64,000 bases of DNA, from contig CDMY01000373.1 in assembly GCA_001179505.1 (NCBI GenBank), positions 1-64,000 of the forward strand, in the 5' to 3' direction. Both the position numbers and the translations under genes were made by a program. Below, piece after piece: positions 2,288 through 56,040 of the stretch. The DNA comes from Vitrella brassicaformis CCMP3155. Lineage: Eukaryota > Protista > Chromerida. Every line of letters begins with the position of its first letter. Within the stretch, counting starts at the first letter, position 1. The notes under the pieces are model-generated. The model was given only the letters and a program-made list of their open reading frames with translations. It did no database searches and had not been told where the DNA came from.

Positions 2288-3953
2288 TCAGATTCCTACG
2301 TTGTTTGGATGAAAGTGCGCCTCCAGCCGGTCAGTCTCCTCCTTCTCAAACAGGGCTTCAAGCTCCGTGACGCTCGCACCGTCCCTCTCGAGCACTGCGG
2401 CCCTCAGGTAGGTCACCATTAGCCGCTGTAGATGTCCATGTGATTCCGTCGTGGCCTGGATGGCTTCCAGGACCTGCAGCGCGGAGATGCGACGGCCGGG
2501 CCTTTCCTTCTCAGTGAGATGGTCGCTTCGGTCGTATTGGTCTTCTCCCTCACCCCTTGCACAAGCGTCGAAAGAGACCTGCCGTTGGCAAGGCCGGCGA
2601 GAGACCTGAATGACAGAAAGAGACAGACCGACGGTGCAGAGCATGCTCATCCCGGTGCGTACGTGTGTGTGTGTGTGTGTGTGTGTGGCGTACCTTGTGA
2701 AGGCGACCAACAGCTGGCCCTGTGGCCAGAGGTCCTCAGGCTCTGGGAGAGCCATCACTCCGCCCCAATTGCCAAATCTCGCCTCGACGACATGCTCAAG
2801 TGTCGCATGGGTGTCGGCGAGGTCCTTTACGGTCTCCATACGCTCAAAGTCCGTCTTCTGTTTGACCTCCTGCGCGTAGTGCCGCGCCATGGACGCGTTG
2901 TTGGTGAGCATGCCGATCACAGCCAGGAAGTGATGTGACTGAACCAAAAGGCAGAAATGGCCGTTGATTGCATTCCCTCCTCTTTGTCTATGTGTGGGCC
3001 CTTTCACGGAGGTAATGATACTCGTAGTAGAGAGCGGACAGGCCCTGGCCATTCTGCGAGAAGTAGGCATGGTCAGTGGCGATGGCCCTCAAGTTGGCGT
3101 CGATCGCCTCGTCCCACATGCCCCGCCTCCAGGAGATGTGTGTGGGCATGTGCTCGAAATGAGCGATCCTCCCATCAGAGAAACTCGGCAGCTGCTGCGC
3201 CGCCATCAATCCCAACTCGTCAGTGGTGTTCCTCTCCGTGAGATGGATGTACGTGTGCCAGGCTCCTGGATGGTGGGGATACTCGGGGATGGCACCCCGC
3301 AAGATGCTGATGGCCTGCTCTCGGTGCGACAGGGAGGCGTCGATGGCGTCGGCGAAGAGCATGGCGTCCGTCAACAAAGCCACGATCTCTGCCTCAACGG
3401 CCGGCTGGTCAGCATGGTGCGACCGCAGGTCTTGCAGAGCCGCAATGAGGTACTGCTGGCCCTCGCCTGGCGTCTTCTGCGTGAGCGACTCATGAAGCTC
3501 CTCGATGAGCCGCTTCTCCAAATCGCTGATCTCTCTCTCGCCGCCGGCCTCTTCCGCCTCATTTCGCCGCAGCAACGACACGGACGTCTTGCTGTATGGG
3601 AGGGCCGCTGACGTGAGTGGGTGTCCAGCTTCGATGGCCTCGTGCTTGCGGCAGATGGCGATGCCCCAGTAACACATGGCACACTTCGCGTCATGATGAG
3701 CCGCCAACCGAAACTGCACACCAACAAACACAAGCGATGAGCAGGCACACAGGTGCGTGTTGTGGTCGTTTATCTTTCGTACATGGTGTTCTCCTTCTTT
3801 GTAGGCATACGCGTAGAACCAGAGAAGGCCCCTGTCGAAAGATTTCGCCGCCTGAGCCACACTCGAGACCGCCACAGGAAAGGAGAACTCACCAGCCGCG
3901 ACGTGTGTCACCGCAATAAGGCTGATCAGCGACGGCAGAAGCCAAGAACACAT
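2288..3953 (-). CDS. Secreted bacterial/fungal-type TPR-domain protein, spliced; a further 3' exon to ~2090-2150 is possible
   Basis: Signal peptide MCSWLLPSLISLIAVTHVAA. Removing intron 3714-3782 gives FDRGLLWFYAYAYKEGEHHFRLAAHHDAKCAMCYWGIA. Further motifs are HHPGAWHTYIHLTE, HFEHMPTHI, HHFL, ARFGNWGGVMALPEP and HPNN, matching the CAMxYWG / HPGAxHxYIH / HMPSH family recognised from memory. One junction near 2940-3010 could not be closed in frame with GT-AG. Confidence 0.75.
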
Positions 3954-4307
3954 TGCGAGCTGAGCCGCAACGATAGAATCCGTCAAAAGTTGTCAAGATC
4001 TCCCAGACGAGGTGAGACTAGCATCACGCTCACCATCACATCTCGCCGGCCTTCAGAAATCAGTTCCTTCTTCTCGGTCCAGAAAAGGAAGCGATCCAGA
4101 GAAAGCGAGAGAGCGAGAACGCCGCAGGAGAAGTGAGCAGCACACAGCACTTACGAAGGGTCCACCAAGACAACACCAGGCCTCAGATCTCTGATTTCGG
4201 CTGTCCCCTCAATCCCACCCAACTTGGGCTCGCAATTGCGACGATCGGAAAAGGAAGAAACGCGAACAGCCGAAAACGACGAGAAACAAGCACCAACCGA
4301 TAGAGCC

Positions 4308-5504
4308 ATGACCACACTGATAGTCCTGACCCTCTTGGCCCTCCTGCTCTTCCCCTCAGGTACACTCACGTGGGAGGGGGGGTGTGGGACACTCACATGA
4401 CGTGCGGAGAATGAGACACAACGGAGCGTCTCCCCCTCCCTCTCTGTGTGTGGTGTGTCTGTTCAGTCTTCGCGCAGGAGGTGGCCACACAGAACGAGCA
4501 ACAGGCACACGATGACGACACTCGCGAACTGGCCCCTGTGGATCTCCAGTCGGCACTCGACGCCATCCGCATGGGCGAGCGGGGCAGGATGAGCTTCCAG
4601 AGCCTCCAGCGCCAGCGCATCACGTCCCTGCCCCGTCCCGGCTCACCCATCAGCAGCGGCACCCGACAGCAGGGAGGTGACGTCCCGTCGGGCATGATTG
4701 ACCTGGGAATGGCCGGCGGCACGCGCCAGCTCGAAGACACCGAGGCAGCCATCGACGAGGCACCACGGCTGCTCAATGAAGGTGAGCAACCACTCACAAA
4801 GGGTAGGGAGGGGTGGCCACGAAGGGTGCGAATGCGCATCTGTGTGTGTGTGTGTGTGTGTGTGTCGTGCAGCCGTTGCGCCAGAGAATGACGCCGACGA
4901 GATCGACCCCACAGAGGACGAGTTGCGCGAGCTGTTTGGCGGTGGCGGCGGGCCTGTGGACCTGCAGACGGCACTCCAGAACATCCGCATGGGCGACCGC
5001 GGCCGCATGAGGATCGACCGACTCCGCAACGAGCGCATCACGGCCCTCCCCTCATCGCCCGTCGCCGACCAGATCCGCATCGGCACCCGCCAGGGCGGCG
5101 CCTCCACGGGCACAGGGACCTACAGCGCCCAGGATCTCGCCTCCATGATTCGCAGCTCACGGATGCAGGCAATGCAGAACGCCGCTTCTGCTATGCGCGC
5201 GGCCGCGGGTGGCGGAGGAGGAGGCGGCTCGCGGCAGCTCGAGGAGACCGAGAGTGAGCCAGCGGCTGTCGAGGCCCCTGCTGATGGAATGGGCGACGAG
5301 GAGCCTCGAGAGCTCCAGGTGGACATGACGGCGGCGCTGAACCGCATCCGTGGTGGCGACCGCATGTCACTCGACCGGATGCGCAACGCCCGCATCACCT
5401 CCCTGCCGCAGGGTGGTCAGCGGGTCCCCCCCATGGGCACACCGACGAGCGGCGGCCGACGGCTGCGTGGCGACGCCGCCCAGGAGACAGAGGAGGAGCA
5501 ATGA
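4308..5504 (+). CDS. Secreted three-repeat precursor protein with R-x-L motifs and acidic spacers (novel)
   Basis: Exons 4308-4359, 4467-4781 and 4873-5504 join in frame through two phase-1 GT-AG introns. The signal peptide is MTTLIVLTLLALLLFPSVFA. Three repeats follow the pattern VD(L/M)xxALxxIRxG(D/E)R..M...R..RIT(S/A)LP. Confidence 0.85.
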
Positions 5505-6884
5505 TGGGCTGGATGGATGAATGGGTAGCGAGTCGAGTGTGTGTGCGACTTGGGCTGGATGGATGTCTGTCTGATCGTGGCGGCTCGTGAGGTGAGCCGT
5601 CTTGTATCCATTTGTTGTGTTGTGTGGGGTGGATGGATGGGGCGGGTGGGCTGCCGGCAGATCAGATCTGATGTAGTCTACTGTCTAGTCTAGTCCACTG
5701 CCTGTAGATGTACCGACCGACCTACCACCAAGCCGACCAAACCACTGGACAAGGAGCACACGCACTCACCCTCACACACAGCACAGCACAGCAGACAGGC
5801 TTTTTCCGTGTCTTATCGGATCATCGGATCATCGGATGACGAATCAGGGGATGGGTCGACTGTACATGGCTCTTGTGCACAAGACATAGATACATACCGA
5901 ACACACTGCAACACTACACTGACTGGTGGTGGTGGGTGGATCTGTGTCATCACGTGTGTTTGTCCGCGTGTGGATGTGTTGGGCTGCCGGTGCTACTGTA
6001 GACAGACAGGGGGGGACCGGCAGTTGGCACACGTCCACACGTGTGCCGGTTGCTTTGTCCCGTTGACACCATACCCAGACGTCGCATTCCATCTCTCTAT
6101 CGTACGCCCGCCATGCTGTCTTTCTTTCTTTATCGTAGCGTCATTATTCGTCACACCGTAGTTGCGTTTCCTCGCTCACACTCACATGGGTTCCGCTCTG
6201 TGGTGTGCTGTGTCGCGTTGTGTTGTGTTGTGTTTGTTTGAGTGAAGCTGCGCGTTCATCGCTCGCTTGTGGGTTGAGTGCAAATGTGTACCAAGTACCT
6301 ATTGCTTTATCGCTGTGGTGGCTGCATCGATGGCGTGTGCGTGTCCATGTGTGTGTTTGTGGTATGTCAGCTGCGAGTGATGGACGGGTGGCGGATGCTC
6401 CAAACGTTGACCAGACCGCTACCTACCTACCTACCTACCTTATCTATGGTCGTGTTTGCACCCTCGACTCACTTATCTAACTGTCCACTGACTGACTGAC
6501 TGACTCTCAAGCACTGCCTACTGCTGACATCAGTCAAGACGGACGAGCGAATGGAAGGAACGAACGAGCGGTGTGTACATGTACAGTTGCGATACGTAAA
6601 TTCTTACATACATAGGTGGATGTGTACATGTACATACACATATATACATATACATGTGGATGGAATGGAGCGATCGATCGCCGTACCGTCACAGTGTAAT
6701 TTGCCACTCTATTTTCATTCGTCGCTCATCATGATGACGAGGGCCGGTTCTTTATCAATTCGCCGTGTGTCAGCCATGATGACTGTGGTTTTTGTTTTCC
6801 ATGTATCTTTATACACATGCATGCATATACACGAGTCGACTCACCCCCGTTGTACGTAAATGGATACCTGCCTACCATGTCTGT

Positions 6885-8670: not shown

Positions 8671-10845
8671 CTATGCTCTCTTCTGCTTCTTCTCCGCAGT
8701 GTCATCATGGCGGCGTCCACGGCGCCTCAACAACAGGTCACAGACCATCCGGCAACACGCACTGCACGCAATGCCGCTGATAAAAGCCTGAGAGAGACAC
8801 AGAGATGGGAGAAGAGAAACCATTATATTCTATCAGATGCACTGACAAGCTCGTGGAAATCACCTCACCAGCATAAAGCCGGCAGCAATGAAATCGAGCG
8901 CAAAGGCCGAGATGAAGCCTTCGCGGTCAGCCACAGTCTGCAGTTGAAGGGTATCTCCCCTCAGGAACGCCACAAGCTCAACCAAATCTGCAGAATGAAG
9001 AGAAGGTCAAGCGGGGTCAACGCAGCCTTCCATTCTTCTTCTTCCCTCTCTCTCGCGAACCGGCAGCTCGCTTGACGCCTCCGTACGTGTGGGAGATGCG
9101 GCTCAGCTTCATGGCAGTGTCTCGATAAGAGAGGTTGCTGATGACCTCCGATATGCTCTGCTGGATGCCCTGTGCGGTGAGAGAGGCTACATTCAGGCAG
9201 ACGGCAGCGCCGGCACGCTGTACTCGCAGACAGTTGTCAGGCTGGTCGCCTATACACACGCAGACAGACAGACACAGAGATTAATGACAGCAGTTGGATT
9301 GGACGTCCATGTGCCCACGCATCTCACCGATGAAAGGCATGCCGATGATGGGCTTGCCGATGTGCAGCGACTCGTGCAGACCATTCGCGCCGCAATGGCT
9401 GAAGAAGGCCTTGACGCGAGGGTGGCTCAATGCCGCCGGGGTCGGCACCCTGCACAACATTCAGATGGAAAGGCCGCCATGACAGCCTGCTCTCCTTCCT
9501 CGCTGTCCTTTTCTCCTTCCCATCAGTCGACTTACGTCTGTACCAGGGCAGAATGCGCAGATTGGGGCTGTCCTCATGGCTTGGAAGGTACCGCCAATCC
9601 CTTGCCTTGAGGGCCCACAGGACCCTCCACTCTGACTGGTTGACCAGCCCCTCGAACAAGATCGGCCCGGTGGTCTCGTCAATGCCGAACACCGTGCCGA
9701 GGCTGACGTACACCACTGGCAGGTCGGAGGCGTCGAGCCACTCAAGCAGGGAGGGCTCGAGGCGAGAAAGCTGCGTGCTGTCGTTGCGCAGCAGAGGACC
9801 GGTGTATTGGATCAGGGGCTGCGCGTGGAATGGGTAGTCGATGCCAGGGACTGAGTGGATCATCTTCAGAACGCCATCTGTATATCTGTGGACAAATCGA
9901 CACACACGACAGACGGCAGGAGAGGAACCACGGCTGCCTGTGTGTGTGTGCGCATACTTTGGGTGGATGACTGTGAGGGGGTAGCCTCTCACCGGGACAA
10001 TAAAGTGCCACGAGAAGGCCGCCCAGAGCTTCCTCAGCCGCTGCATGATCGTCGCGCCGACATAGGGCACGCTAGAGCCGACAGGCACGCTGCAAACAAA
10101 GACATAAGAAAGGACTGACCCACCTCTCAGTCTGCCTGACCATCTTGGCGCACCTGTAGGGCATCGTGTTGTGCCTGGGAGCCAGGGCGAGCTCGCACTG
10201 CGAGACCATCACAGGAATGCTGTACTTGGATGCGACCTCCATCGTCGGACTAGTCAGAACCGTCGTCACATACACATCAGGGAGCGACGCTGACGCTGCT
10301 GCTGACGACGCGAAGAGATTGTCAAGGCTGTCAGACATACGAGCCGACATCTCTTCGAAGACCGGTCCCCATACCTTCAAACTCGAAGCCTGCCGAAACA
10401 AAACCCGACGCGCGTGCACATGCAGAGCAGATCCTGCTTCAGCTCCTCCTCAGATCTCTCTCACCCCATGCACAGACGCGCGCGCCTTCTCCGCGACTTG
10501 AGCCTCACTAGCTCCCTCGCCCAAGTTGACAAAGGCCAGGCCGGCCCTCTCAACCTTCTCCTGCACTGACGACAGGCTGGCCACCTGCCATGTGTGAAAC
10601 ACGACACATACCATGCAAACGACAACTTGTCCTTCCCCCCTACTTACCTGGACATCGTGTCCTCGTTTGCTCAGCTCTTTGGCGAGCTCGATGATGGGAT
10701 GCACAGGGGAGAAGGGGATGGAAGAGAGCAGGACCCTCAGGCTGCCCTCTGGCCGCTCTGGAGCCGAAGCTGCTTCCCCAGACACACGATGCGGCCGCCG
10801 CACAAGGACTAGCGCCTCCAGTAGCAGGGCTGCAAGCCACCGCAT
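8671..10845 (-). CDS. UDP-glycosyltransferase (GT1, UDP-glucuronosyltransferase-like) with signal peptide, C-terminal TM helix and KxKxx tail
   Basis: N-terminus MRWLAALLLEALVLV...HPIIELAKELSKRGHDVQV; VVYVSLGTVF; WRVLWALK; signature WVPTPAALSHPRVKAFFSHCGANGLHESLHIGKPIIGMPFIGDQPDN. Removing intron 8788-8868 gives LDFIAAGFMLAFISGIACSACCRMVCDLLLRRRGRRHDDTAEKKQKRA*. Confidence 0.9.
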
Positions 10846-13875: not shown

Positions 13876-17156
<3,281 letters not shown>

Positions 17157-53308: not shown

Positions 53309-54359
53309 CAAAGAGAGAGATGTAGAGATCTGCCTGTTGCCTTCCGTTTGAGCACCCTTGTCATGTCACCTCTGCTTCGGTCATGAGCTGCTCGTATCGG
53401 ATCTTCTCTGCGCCAAGCTCTCCCTCGAGCTTGCTCTTCTTGTCGTGGTAGGCCTTGAGCACGTCATTGAGGGCCGTGACGAGTCCGCTGGCCGTGCTGG
53501 GGATGCCCTCCGCCGGCACCGATGGCGGCTGCCTGACCGCCGGCAGCTGCTCACCCTTGCCGGCAGGTGTCTGGCTGAGGTTGATGGACGAGAGGAGCTT
53601 CTTGATCCAGAAGTCATGCAGACCTGCTCGCACACACACACACACACACATGCAAGATCCCGATACGAGCACTTTGGCCCTGGACTTTGGCTGTCCATCG
53701 TGCCTTTGTGTTGACGCTTCTCCGCCTCGGTGAGCAGATGAGAGATCCAGAACCCATCCCGCCCGCCATCGCGTGTCGCCTGCTGGACAGCCCTCCCCTC
53801 CAAGATGGCCTTGTGGATGATCCTGAAGGCATCCGCGTCCACATCAAGGAACATCCGCTGACTGTCGTCTTCGATGAATAAGCCATCCCATCTCCCAGAG
53901 AACAGCGCCCCCAGCAGAGTCCCCTCCACGCCCTCTCCCTCCGTCAGGTGCTTTCGCACAAACCGCCGCTCGGTGCCGCCCAGACTCAGCTGCAGCACGT
54001 CGTCAGGCGAGGCCGCTGATGGGTCAGCGATGCCGTGAGTGTGCATGCAGCCTTCGACGCTCTCCTGCATTGCGATGATCTCCTGCTCCAGCGGCTTGAG
54101 GCTCTCGCACAGGCGCACCACTGGCACGTGCAAGTGCGACAGAATCGAATGCTCGGTCAGGCTGTCGCTGTCCATGTGCCGACAGCGACGCCCCAGCTGC
54201 AGAAAGACAGATTCTGAAAGAGCAACACATGCATGCGTCAAGCGGCTGCACTTGCGTGCGGCTTACCTGCTGATGATCTCCCGGTCTGTTCTCGCCTACA
54301 CAACAGACGATTGCAGGCCGTGCGTCATCTGCCGACAATACAGCAACAAAGCCATTCAT
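52411..54359 (-). CDS. BTB-BTB-FKBP fusion protein, copy B
   Basis: Same exon order and intron phases as copy A: PDDVLQLSLGGTERRF, FLDVDADAFRIIHKAIL, AVTPFLRPVSG...TTQSTVDEMSDKLRNRIDM|WSRPVED...DHYRRKRL, then the FKBP exon RHQVVARGSGEPP...EWRREAILSMCVGEVRRLLVP...IELRLL. Confidence 0.75.
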
Positions 54360-54572
54360 AAAGATTCACTCAGGTCAGTGTTGAGGGCTTCATTGTCACG
54401 TGTTCTACCTTCTGAAGGCATGAAAGGTCCTGATTTCCTGGGACTTTTTCCTGCGCCACTTGCGAGCTCAAGCCCGCAACGAAGTGGGAGAGATCTGGCG
54501 CAAGGAGCTCCTCCAGGGTCCCCTCTGTACCCCACTACTGCCTCTATCTTTCTTTTGACCATCTCGGCCACC

Positions 54573-56040
54573 ATGCTGACGGCCGTCCTCATCCCCTCTC
54601 TGCTGGCCCTCTTTGTCGCGCTCTTTACCCTCCCCGGCAGCCGAGCATTCATCCACAACGCCGCCCGCCACCCCCTCCCCACACACGACAGCAGGCGGCC
54701 CTTCCGCAGAGACCTACTGAGGCATCCCACATCTCACTCGCGTGTCGCTCTCAACGGCATTCGGTGGCCCGGCTCCACCAAGCCGCCCGCCGACTCGTCT
54801 GGCGGCGAATCCGACGCCAATAAGCCCAATCCCAGGTGGTTTGGAGGCGGTCAGCACCAGGGCGGCAGCAACGGCGCAGGCAGCCAGGCCAACGCGCAGA
54901 GCAAGCAGCTGTTCGTGCCGGCCATCAACCCGTCCACTTCTGACTGGCGAGAGTTTCGGGCGCGGCTGGTGGCTGGGTCGCAGGGGCGGTTCGAGCAGAA
55001 CAGCAAGAACATGCAGCTGATGAAGGGATCGGGGTGGATCCATTCTCTGGAGAATGTGGAGAAGGGGTGCTTGCTGATGGCCTCGCCGCGAGCCCGCTTT
55101 AATGGCGACTGCTTCGACCACTCGGTCGTGCTGGTGCTTTCCCATGACCCCGACCTGGGCAGCGTCGGCGTCATACTCAACTACGTGAGCCTTTCTTCCC
55201 CCCCCTCAGGCACACACACATGCCGATGCATGCACGCGTGCATCCATGTGTTGTGTGTGATGCTTGGTTGTCTTGTTCAGCCTCTGTTCCAGCTTGGTCA
55301 CCAGACAGACGCGCCTCGCGAGTTCCAGGACTGCTGGCTGTGCTATGGCGGGCCTGTGGGGACCAATGACGTCATCCTGCTGCACAGCTGCAAAGACATT
55401 CCTGAGGCCAAGGTGCGTATGTGCGTGGCGGGCGGGCAACACATCCATCCGTGTGCCGCGGACGTGTGTGTGCCCGTGCGTGCAGGAGGTTGTCAAGGGC
55501 ATCTATCAAGGCGGCGATCCTCATGCGTGTGCCGAGAGGATCAGGAACCAAAAGGCGTCTCCCAACGACTTTAGATTCTTCCTGCAGTTCGCCGCATGGT
55601 CAGCCACACGCACGCAACCCACACACGAATCAGGCGCGTTCCAATTCATGTGCCCATGTGTATTCCACTGCAGGGCGCCCGGTCAGCTGGAGCAGGAAGT
55701 CAATCTGGGATGGTGGGTGGTGGCCGCCCCCTCCACCGACCTCATTTGGAGCCTTCCCCCCGGCCCAAAACAGCCCTCCTCCTCCGACAAGTCTCCAGCC
55801 ATATGGAAGCTCTGTCTGCAGCAGCTGGGCGGCGACAACGCCAACCTCGCGGCCAAGTCGGTCTTGGACGCCCCGCCAGGCGCGCTGGAGGCCGCAGAGG
55901 CAAGGGCTGCTTCTGCGACCCCCGCTGGTGCGCTGAGCGTGGGTGAGGGGCTGGAGGGTCCTGGTGGGGCGAGGGGAATATCGTTCTCATGGGATGGGCT
56001 GTTTGATAGTTCGGAGGGAGATAAGGAGGAAGAGTCATAG
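54573..56040 (+). CDS. DUF179 (YqgE/AlgH-like) protein with a bipartite plastid-type leader
   Basis: Signal MLTAVLIPSLLALFVALFTLPGSRA|FIHN; DWREFRARLV; EKGCLLMA...FDHSVVLVLSH...GSVGVILN; YGGPVG; FRFFLQFAAW|APGQLEQEVNLGWW. Confidence 0.88.

Follow-up and report, generated by a model that had tools for sequence, protein, structure and literature searches.

Does a free-living relative of the apicomplexan parasites process secreted proteins at the R-x-L motif (arginine, any residue, leucine)? The question is raised by a gene of the chromerid Vitrella brassicaformis CCMP3155, whose exact coding span is 4308-5504 on the + strand of the first 64 kb of contig CDMY01000373.1 (assembly GCA_001179505.1), the stretch analysed here and referred to as the window. 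This gene encodes a putatively secreted protein whose three related, mildly basic segments are set between acidic spacers and fenced by R-x-L sites. Judged from the sequence, the architecture is precursor-like; it is analogous to that of known RxL-processed precursors but shares no homology with them. The lineage that carries the pathway of the Plasmodium export element, PEXEL, counts Vitrella among its free-living relatives (PMC8540915, PMC4501334). A culturable free-living chromerid with R-x-L-fenced secreted polyproteins would make it possible to test directly whether cleavage at RxL is older than parasitism, with bearing on how the apicomplexan pathway of PEXEL and the Toxoplasma export element (TEXEL) arose, and on the diatom RXL protease.

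The N-terminus of the protein looks like a signal peptide over residues 1-20, where a hydrophobic core precedes the predicted cut and V-F-A fills positions -3 to -1; this call was made by inspection and from the database name "Secreted protein", and it agrees with an earlier reading of this DNA made from its sequence only (the sequence-only reading). The protein would accordingly be expected to enter the secretory pathway. The predicted cut is followed by an acidic stretch of 19 residues with a net charge of -5, which ends in REL, so that the leucine of the first R-x-L site lies 19 residues past the cut. A bipartite plastid-targeting signal was considered and rejected, a transit peptide being unlikely because the region behind the signal peptide is so strongly acidic. 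The composition is unusual: Lys, Cys and Trp are absent from all 332 residues, while Arg occurs 35 times, Met 16 times and Ser makes up 6.6%. The probability of finding no lysine at all is ~2e-4, as calculated with a crude background taken from neighbouring long open reading frames (ORFs), which hold 2.5% Lys.

Behind the signal peptide, three diverged copies of one module follow one another. Each module runs from an acidic spacer ending in R-E-L, through a core of 31-33 residues and a tail of variable length rich in Pro, Gly, Ser and Thr, to a closing GG-x-R-x-L. The cores are rich in Arg and Met and end in RIT[SA]LP; in an alignment that includes short flanks, all three agree at 17 columns, among them the three of the upstream R-E-L, and the invariant core pattern reads V-D...A-L..I-R.G...R-M...R-I-T.L-P. 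Core-to-core identity is 55-56% in protein and 71-76% in nucleotides, and the three-module layout put forward by the sequence-only reading is therefore real at the DNA level. The units close with GGTRQL, GGSRQL and SGGRRL, and between units 1 and 2 conservation is highest at the junction GG[TS]RQLE[DE]TE, with 87% nucleotide identity between 4715-4744 and 5223-5252. Units 1 and 2 are separated by a long spacer (spacer 1) that intron 2 interrupts midway. Its DEAP-RLL stretch bears a weak similarity to the DEEP-REL junction of unit 3 (22 nt, 73% identity; 5294-5315); to judge from these letters, spacer 1 may have arisen when a unit was lost and the spacers on either side of it fused, its RLL being a possible relic of a junction of the DEEP-REL type.

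All seven RxL sites that had been predicted are present, with one at every junction between acidic and basic sequence (Table 1). REL occurs three times, RQL twice, and RLL and RRL once each. Three of the seven (RQLED, RLLNE and RQLEE) fit the PEXEL-like pentamer RxLx[E/Q/D], as had also been noted. The placement of the sites is a stronger signal than their number. When the protein is cut in silico after the seven leucines, acidic and basic blocks alternate strictly, the fragments carrying net charges of -5, +3, -4, -9, +7, -9, +6 and -4; the absolute values add up to 47, compared with 27.5 +/- 5.5 for seven random cuts (p ~0.001, a value inflated by the duplication of the units). One further aspect of the placement holds despite this caveat. 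R-E-L is invariant before each of the cores, although its flanking residues vary, and GG-x-R-x-L ends all three units at a distance of 20-60 residues from the core, in tails that are otherwise unconserved. The pre-core junction and the unit-end junction are thus non-homologous positions, yet R-x-L stands in both and is kept in all three copies of each.

The gene model behind this protein is supported by transcripts. The spliced translation is identical to the protein deposited for V. brassicaformis CCMP3155 (P0001), with entries in NCBI, UniRef (where it is named "Secreted protein"), MMETSP and EukProt. Both introns of the three-exon gene have GT..AG borders, whose orientation assigns the gene to the + strand. 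Transcript evidence consists of assembled contigs from four public runs, of which two carry an RNA flag; they cover 4230-4355, 4463-4781 and 4873-5900. The first splice joint, 4355/4463, has a 4-base ambiguity and resolves to 4359/4467, with 107 nt skipped in all four runs; at the second, 4781/4873, the contig pieces stop and resume in all four runs. The uninterrupted 999-nt reading frame is present in two cDNA-type contigs, L002 and L003, and begins at base 79 of the latter. Given these splice joints and the intact frame, the gene is transcribed and is spliced as the sequence-only reading had it. Codon periodicity is clear as well, since the G+C content is 0.80 at third codon positions (GC3) and 0.52 at second positions (GC2), as is typical of coding sequence in the Vitrella genome. 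Intron 2 holds a (GT)n microsatellite at 4843-4866 where assemblers appear to break (skipped repeats 4827-4872). The RNA contigs also run past the stop codon, L003 by ~1.9 kb beyond the frame and the X1 contig by ~1 kb beyond 5900, which reflects either a long 3′ untranslated region (UTR) or overlap with a downstream transcript.

The single-sequence AlphaFold2 model (mean predicted local distance difference test score, pLDDT, 51.6; predicted template modelling score, pTM, 0.19) shows isolated helices without a tertiary fold, one per core (residues 44-70, 153-177 and 274-298), and the ESM Atlas model is similar (pLDDT 0.40, pTM 0.15); the protein is predicted to be largely disordered. In the AlphaFold2 model, five of the seven RxL sites would lie outside helices, and all seven fall in regions of moderate or low confidence. 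The tail of unit 2 holds an additional Met/Ala-rich predicted helix (residues 208-234, 5127-5207) that is absent from units 1 and 3 and reaches the highest confidence of any internal region of the model (pLDDT 76-78). A match of the repeat to a known folded domain would have pointed away from a peptide precursor, and neither Pfam, nor a sequence search of the PDB (best E-value 0.15), nor AlphaFold2 gave one; in Pfam, exon 3 matches nothing and exon 2 matches only DUF4398, at E = 0.028, below the cut-off of that family. The core element A-L-x-x-I-R-x-G resembles the helix of the WH2 actin-binding motif (LLxxIxxG). This candidate was rejected: the protein has no Pfam WH2 match even at E up to 10, the LKKV-type part is absent, its positions being occupied by RGRM or DRMS, and the protein carries a signal peptide.

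The repeats had been described as basic, Arg-rich and amphipathic, and antimicrobial peptides had been proposed among the possible products. The basic character stands in a mild form, since the putative basic products would carry +3, +7 and +6 over 67, 102 and 50 residues; the descriptions as Arg-rich amphipathic and as antimicrobial do not. The maximal helical hydrophobic moment of the cores over 18 residues is 0.43-0.51, a value reached by 19-46% of shuffled sequences. The amphipathic or antimicrobial reading was therefore set aside, as peptides that are weakly cationic and not demonstrably amphipathic lend it no support. The nearest neighbour in ESM features is a cluster of apidaecin multi-peptide precursors, whose score of 0.61 lies within the range of shuffled proteins and makes it a lead only.

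Searches for relatives returned only the protein itself, whether by querying 5.8 billion clustered proteins with exon 3 in a word-indexed search, by exhaustive phmmer against 1.84 billion representatives, or by pattern and tblastn searches of Joint Genome Institute (JGI) metagenome contigs with the three-core alignment; short repeats of ~30 bits fall below significance in libraries of such size, and distant motif-level relatives could escape detection there. By these sequence comparisons, the gene is an orphan, lineage-restricted to V. brassicaformis.

The closest parallels to its layout are found in diatoms. Sil1p combines a signal peptide and an acidic region with basic repeats that end in RRIL or RRNL, motifs absent from the mature peptides (PMC4557024). 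RXL likewise follows the signal peptide and closes repeats in silacidins, cingulins and frustulins, and it has been proposed as a general endopeptidase recognition motif in diatoms (PMC4557024; PMC5525289). The Vitrella protein resembles these biosilica precursors (Sil1p of Cylindrotheca fusiformis, silacidin of Thalassiosira pseudonana, and the pro-regions of cingulin, frustulin and Sin1) in its signal peptide and short acidic pro-region ending in R-x-L, in the R-x-L-type motif at the C-terminal end of every repeat unit, and in the opposite charge of the pro-region or spacers and the peptides. It differs from them in that no sequence similarity was found in Pfam or in the large protein searches, in that its units are 50-102 residues long rather than 15-33, and in that each unit has its own acidic spacer. 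Moreover, it is not rich in Ser, Asp and Glu as silacidins are, and it has no lysine, unlike silaffins, so that the polyamine-modified lysines of the silaffin type are impossible. To our knowledge, Vitrella, an alveolate, is not silicified.

Apicomplexans provide the second set of parallels. They cut RxL in the endoplasmic reticulum (ER; plasmepsin V, acting on PEXEL) or in the Golgi (ASP5, acting on TEXEL) (PMC8540915). The precedents that the sequence-only reading had cited are thus found in the literature, for diatom RXL (PMC4557024, PMC5525289) as well as for plasmepsin V with PEXEL and ASP5 with TEXEL (PMC8540915, PMC4764566). Like Plasmodium PEXEL substrates, the Vitrella protein would have an ER signal sequence, an R-x-L 19 residues past the predicted cut and three full RxLx[E/Q/D] pentamers. 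Unlike them, its first site reads RELAP, with Pro at position 5, and the canonical pentamers lie deeper, at residues 104, 118 and 243; PEXEL is moreover a single N-terminal element, whereas the Vitrella sites are multiple and internal and fence repeats, and there is no host cell for export. Like the TEXEL substrates of Toxoplasma, it would be a secretory-pathway protein cut at an Arg/Leu motif. ASP5 is reported to mature its substrates at C-terminal as well as N-terminal positions and is thus not confined to sites beside the signal peptide (PMC4764566). The literature search brought up no paper in which RxL processing or an orthologue of plasmepsin V or ASP5 is linked with Vitrella or Chromera, and no Vitrella secretome or wall proteome.

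Two other systems are similar in part. In oomycetes, the RXLR and EER motifs are both proteolytically processed (PMC11754927). The Vitrella protein shares with RxLR-dEER leaders an R-x-L motif after the signal peptide and then an acidic stretch, and its last site reads RRLR followed by an E-rich acidic tail; this RRLR is C-terminal, whereas the oomycete leaders are N-terminal, the protein has no WY or other effector domain, and the organism is a free-living phototroph. Insect multi-peptide precursors of the apidaecin type also combine a signal peptide with acidic spacers that alternate with related basic peptides. Such precursors, like comparable antimicrobial or neuropeptide polyproteins, are cut at dibasic and dipeptidyl sites. 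The Vitrella units are not fenced by sites of these kinds, and the peptides would be long, charged +3 to +7 and not amphipathic beyond chance.

Because the layout matches that of the diatom RXL precursors and of the apicomplexan PEXEL/TEXEL substrates by analogy, the protein may reasonably be read as a peptide precursor, and a proprotein that is cut after R-x-L appears to be the single most likely mechanism, with a confidence that falls a little short of even. According to this model, the signal peptide would be removed first, and an endoprotease of the ER or Golgi that recognises R-x-L would then cut after the leucine. This would release the acidic pro-piece of 19 amino acids and three mildly basic peptides of ~67, 102 and 50 residues, together with three acidic spacer fragments and the acidic tail of 12 amino acids, while in the intact chain the acidic spacers would neutralise the basic segments. 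The products would probably serve as material of the extracellular matrix or wall, or in signalling; we infer the cleavage, the kind of protease and the role of the products by analogy with the systems described above.

Several observations weigh against this model. Four of the seven sites lack E, Q or D at position 5 of the PEXEL pentamer, and ASP5 needs a 'highly constrained' RRL, which in the Vitrella protein occurs at only one of the seven sites, at residue 318. The number of RxL motifs is only marginally enriched (7 for 3.0 expected; shuffle p = 0.026), this p-value being inflated, like that for charge, because the three units are duplicates; in raw RxL enrichment, exon 3 of the gene is unremarkable among the 326 ORFs of the window, and no other of these ORFs is conspicuous either. 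In addition, REL directly abuts the conserved core and could be a mere part of the core motif. The ratio of nonsynonymous to synonymous divergence (dN/dS) between cores, 0.55-0.86, indicates weak overall constraint and reflects a mosaic of invariant and free positions. With no homologue in the three large searches, there is none in which the conservation of RxL could be compared across species. On the side of the enzymes, the diatom RXL protease still lacks an identification (PMC5525289), and the paper whose tree includes Vitrella is silent on chromerids in clade D, the clade of plasmepsin V and ASP5.

The same architecture can be explained without cleavage. It is possible, though we consider it somewhat unlikely, that the protein is secreted whole, as an uncleaved blocky polyampholyte whose charge blocks drive self-association or binding to wall polymers in a matrix, a sporangium wall or an adhesive. 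R-E-L and GG-x-R-x-L would then be kept as parts of interaction motifs and not as cut sites. The strong charge blockiness, the disorder with isolated helices and the contact between REL and the conserved core all suit such a protein, as do the SP/TP-rich tails (Ser-Pro and Thr-Pro) behind each core, which could bear O-glycans, and the absence of Lys, Cys and Trp, which suggests a compositionally specialised structural protein. What this explanation leaves unaccounted for is the R-x-L shared by two non-homologous junction positions and the conservation of the unit-end junction, which is higher than that of the core; neither Pfam nor the large protein searches revealed similarity to a known wall or matrix family. 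It has also to be considered that R-x-L in an acidic context could direct luminal sorting rather than polyprotein cleavage, for instance into a dense secretory organelle of the zoospore, with any processing limited to the first site. The 19 residues between the predicted cut and the leucine of that site recall the diatom RXL pro-region (~30 residues), and the motif is linked with the trafficking of proteins in Plasmodium and Toxoplasma. A single copy would suffice for sorting, whereas the protein keeps seven, one per module junction, and the literature search yielded nothing on secretory organelles of Vitrella or their cargo, so that this role appears very unlikely.

A further alternative is a young, fast-evolving low-complexity orphan of little specific function in which tandem triplication copied the edges of the unit, the RxL sites being an inherited coincidence. 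The lack of relatives in protein and JGI metagenome searches and the core dN/dS of 0.55-0.86 are as expected of such a gene, and so are the marginal count (p = 0.026) and the unremarkable raw enrichment of RxL among the window ORFs. It is nevertheless transcribed and correctly spliced in the contigs of four runs and has clear coding periodicity (GC3 0.80 vs GC2 0.52), it keeps 17 invariant columns despite divergence to 55-56% protein identity, and the junction motif is its best-conserved DNA segment; this explanation is therefore unlikely as well.

If the protein is indeed cut after R-x-L, its meaning could extend beyond one locus, in a scenario that we hold to be speculative and rather doubtful. 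In it, Vitrella would mature a large number of unrelated secreted polyproteins, the product of this gene among them, by one general system, an R-x-L-specific protease of its secretory pathway. The parasite PEXEL/TEXEL pathway would then descend from ordinary proprotein processing in a free-living ancestor, of a kind that the diatom RXL and oomycete RxLR systems may have in common with it. One orphan gene cannot by itself carry the claim that RxL cleavage pre-dates parasitism. It does offer a clean and well-expressed test substrate, which has seven sites and lacks lysine, and whose fragment sizes can be predicted.

Table 1. Features of the three-exon gene and its protein, in window coordinates
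Feature	Position	Strand	Remarks
5′ untranslated region	4230..4307	+	RNA contigs start at 4230, 4235, 4264; no ATG upstream of 4308
Exon 1	4308..4359	+	start codon, signal peptide residues 1-17, first base of codon 18
Intron 1	4360..4466	+	107 nt, GT..AG; interrupts signal peptide
Exon 2	4467..4781	+	signal-peptide end, acidic pro-piece, unit 1, first half of spacer 1
Predicted signal-peptide cut	between VFA and QE, after residue 20	+	encoded in exon 2
RxL site 1, REL	4523..4531	+	residues 37-39; end of acidic pro-piece
Core repeat 1	4535..4633	+	residues 41-73; direct repeats, alignment, predicted helix 44-70
RxL site 2, RQL in RQLED	4724..4732	+	residues 104-106; end of unit 1
RxL site 3, RLL in RLLNE	4766..4774	+	residues 118-120; inside spacer 1
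Intron 2	4782..4872	+	91 nt, GT..AG; (GT)n run inside; directly after RLLNE
Exon 3	4873..5504	+	second half of spacer 1, unit 2, spacer 2, unit 3, acidic C-terminal tail, stop
RxL site 4, REL	4926..4934	+	residues 141-143; start of unit 2
Core repeat 2	4953..5051	+	residues 150-182; direct repeats, alignment, predicted helix
RxL site 5, RQL in RQLEE	5232..5240	+	residues 243-245; end of unit 2
RxL site 6, REL	5307..5315	+	residues 268-270; start of unit 3
Core repeat 3	5316..5408	+	residues 271-301, two shorter than other cores; direct repeats, alignment, predicted helix
RxL site 7, RRL	5457..5465	+	residues 318-320; end of unit 3, before 12-residue acidic tail

In the 64-kb window, the neighbouring genes give no functional context for the gene at 4308-5504. 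A divergent gene at 2988-4036 (-) encodes a product of 301 amino acids without a Pfam family and starts ~270 bp from the start codon at 4308; transcript contig L002 (5031 nt) spans both genes, so that the two may share a bidirectional promoter region or overlap at their 5′ ends. At 3-10 kb downstream, Pfam matches identify a UDP-glycosyltransferase-family gene (8671-10845, -) and a spermine/spermidine synthase-family gene (13876-15240, -). Diatom polyamines act with RXL-processed peptides, and the proximity of the latter gene is probably coincidental. Further away, a long reading frame at 54039-55574 (+) has a DUF179/AlgH-like match just above the Pfam cut-off (E = 4e-6, 27.3 bits).

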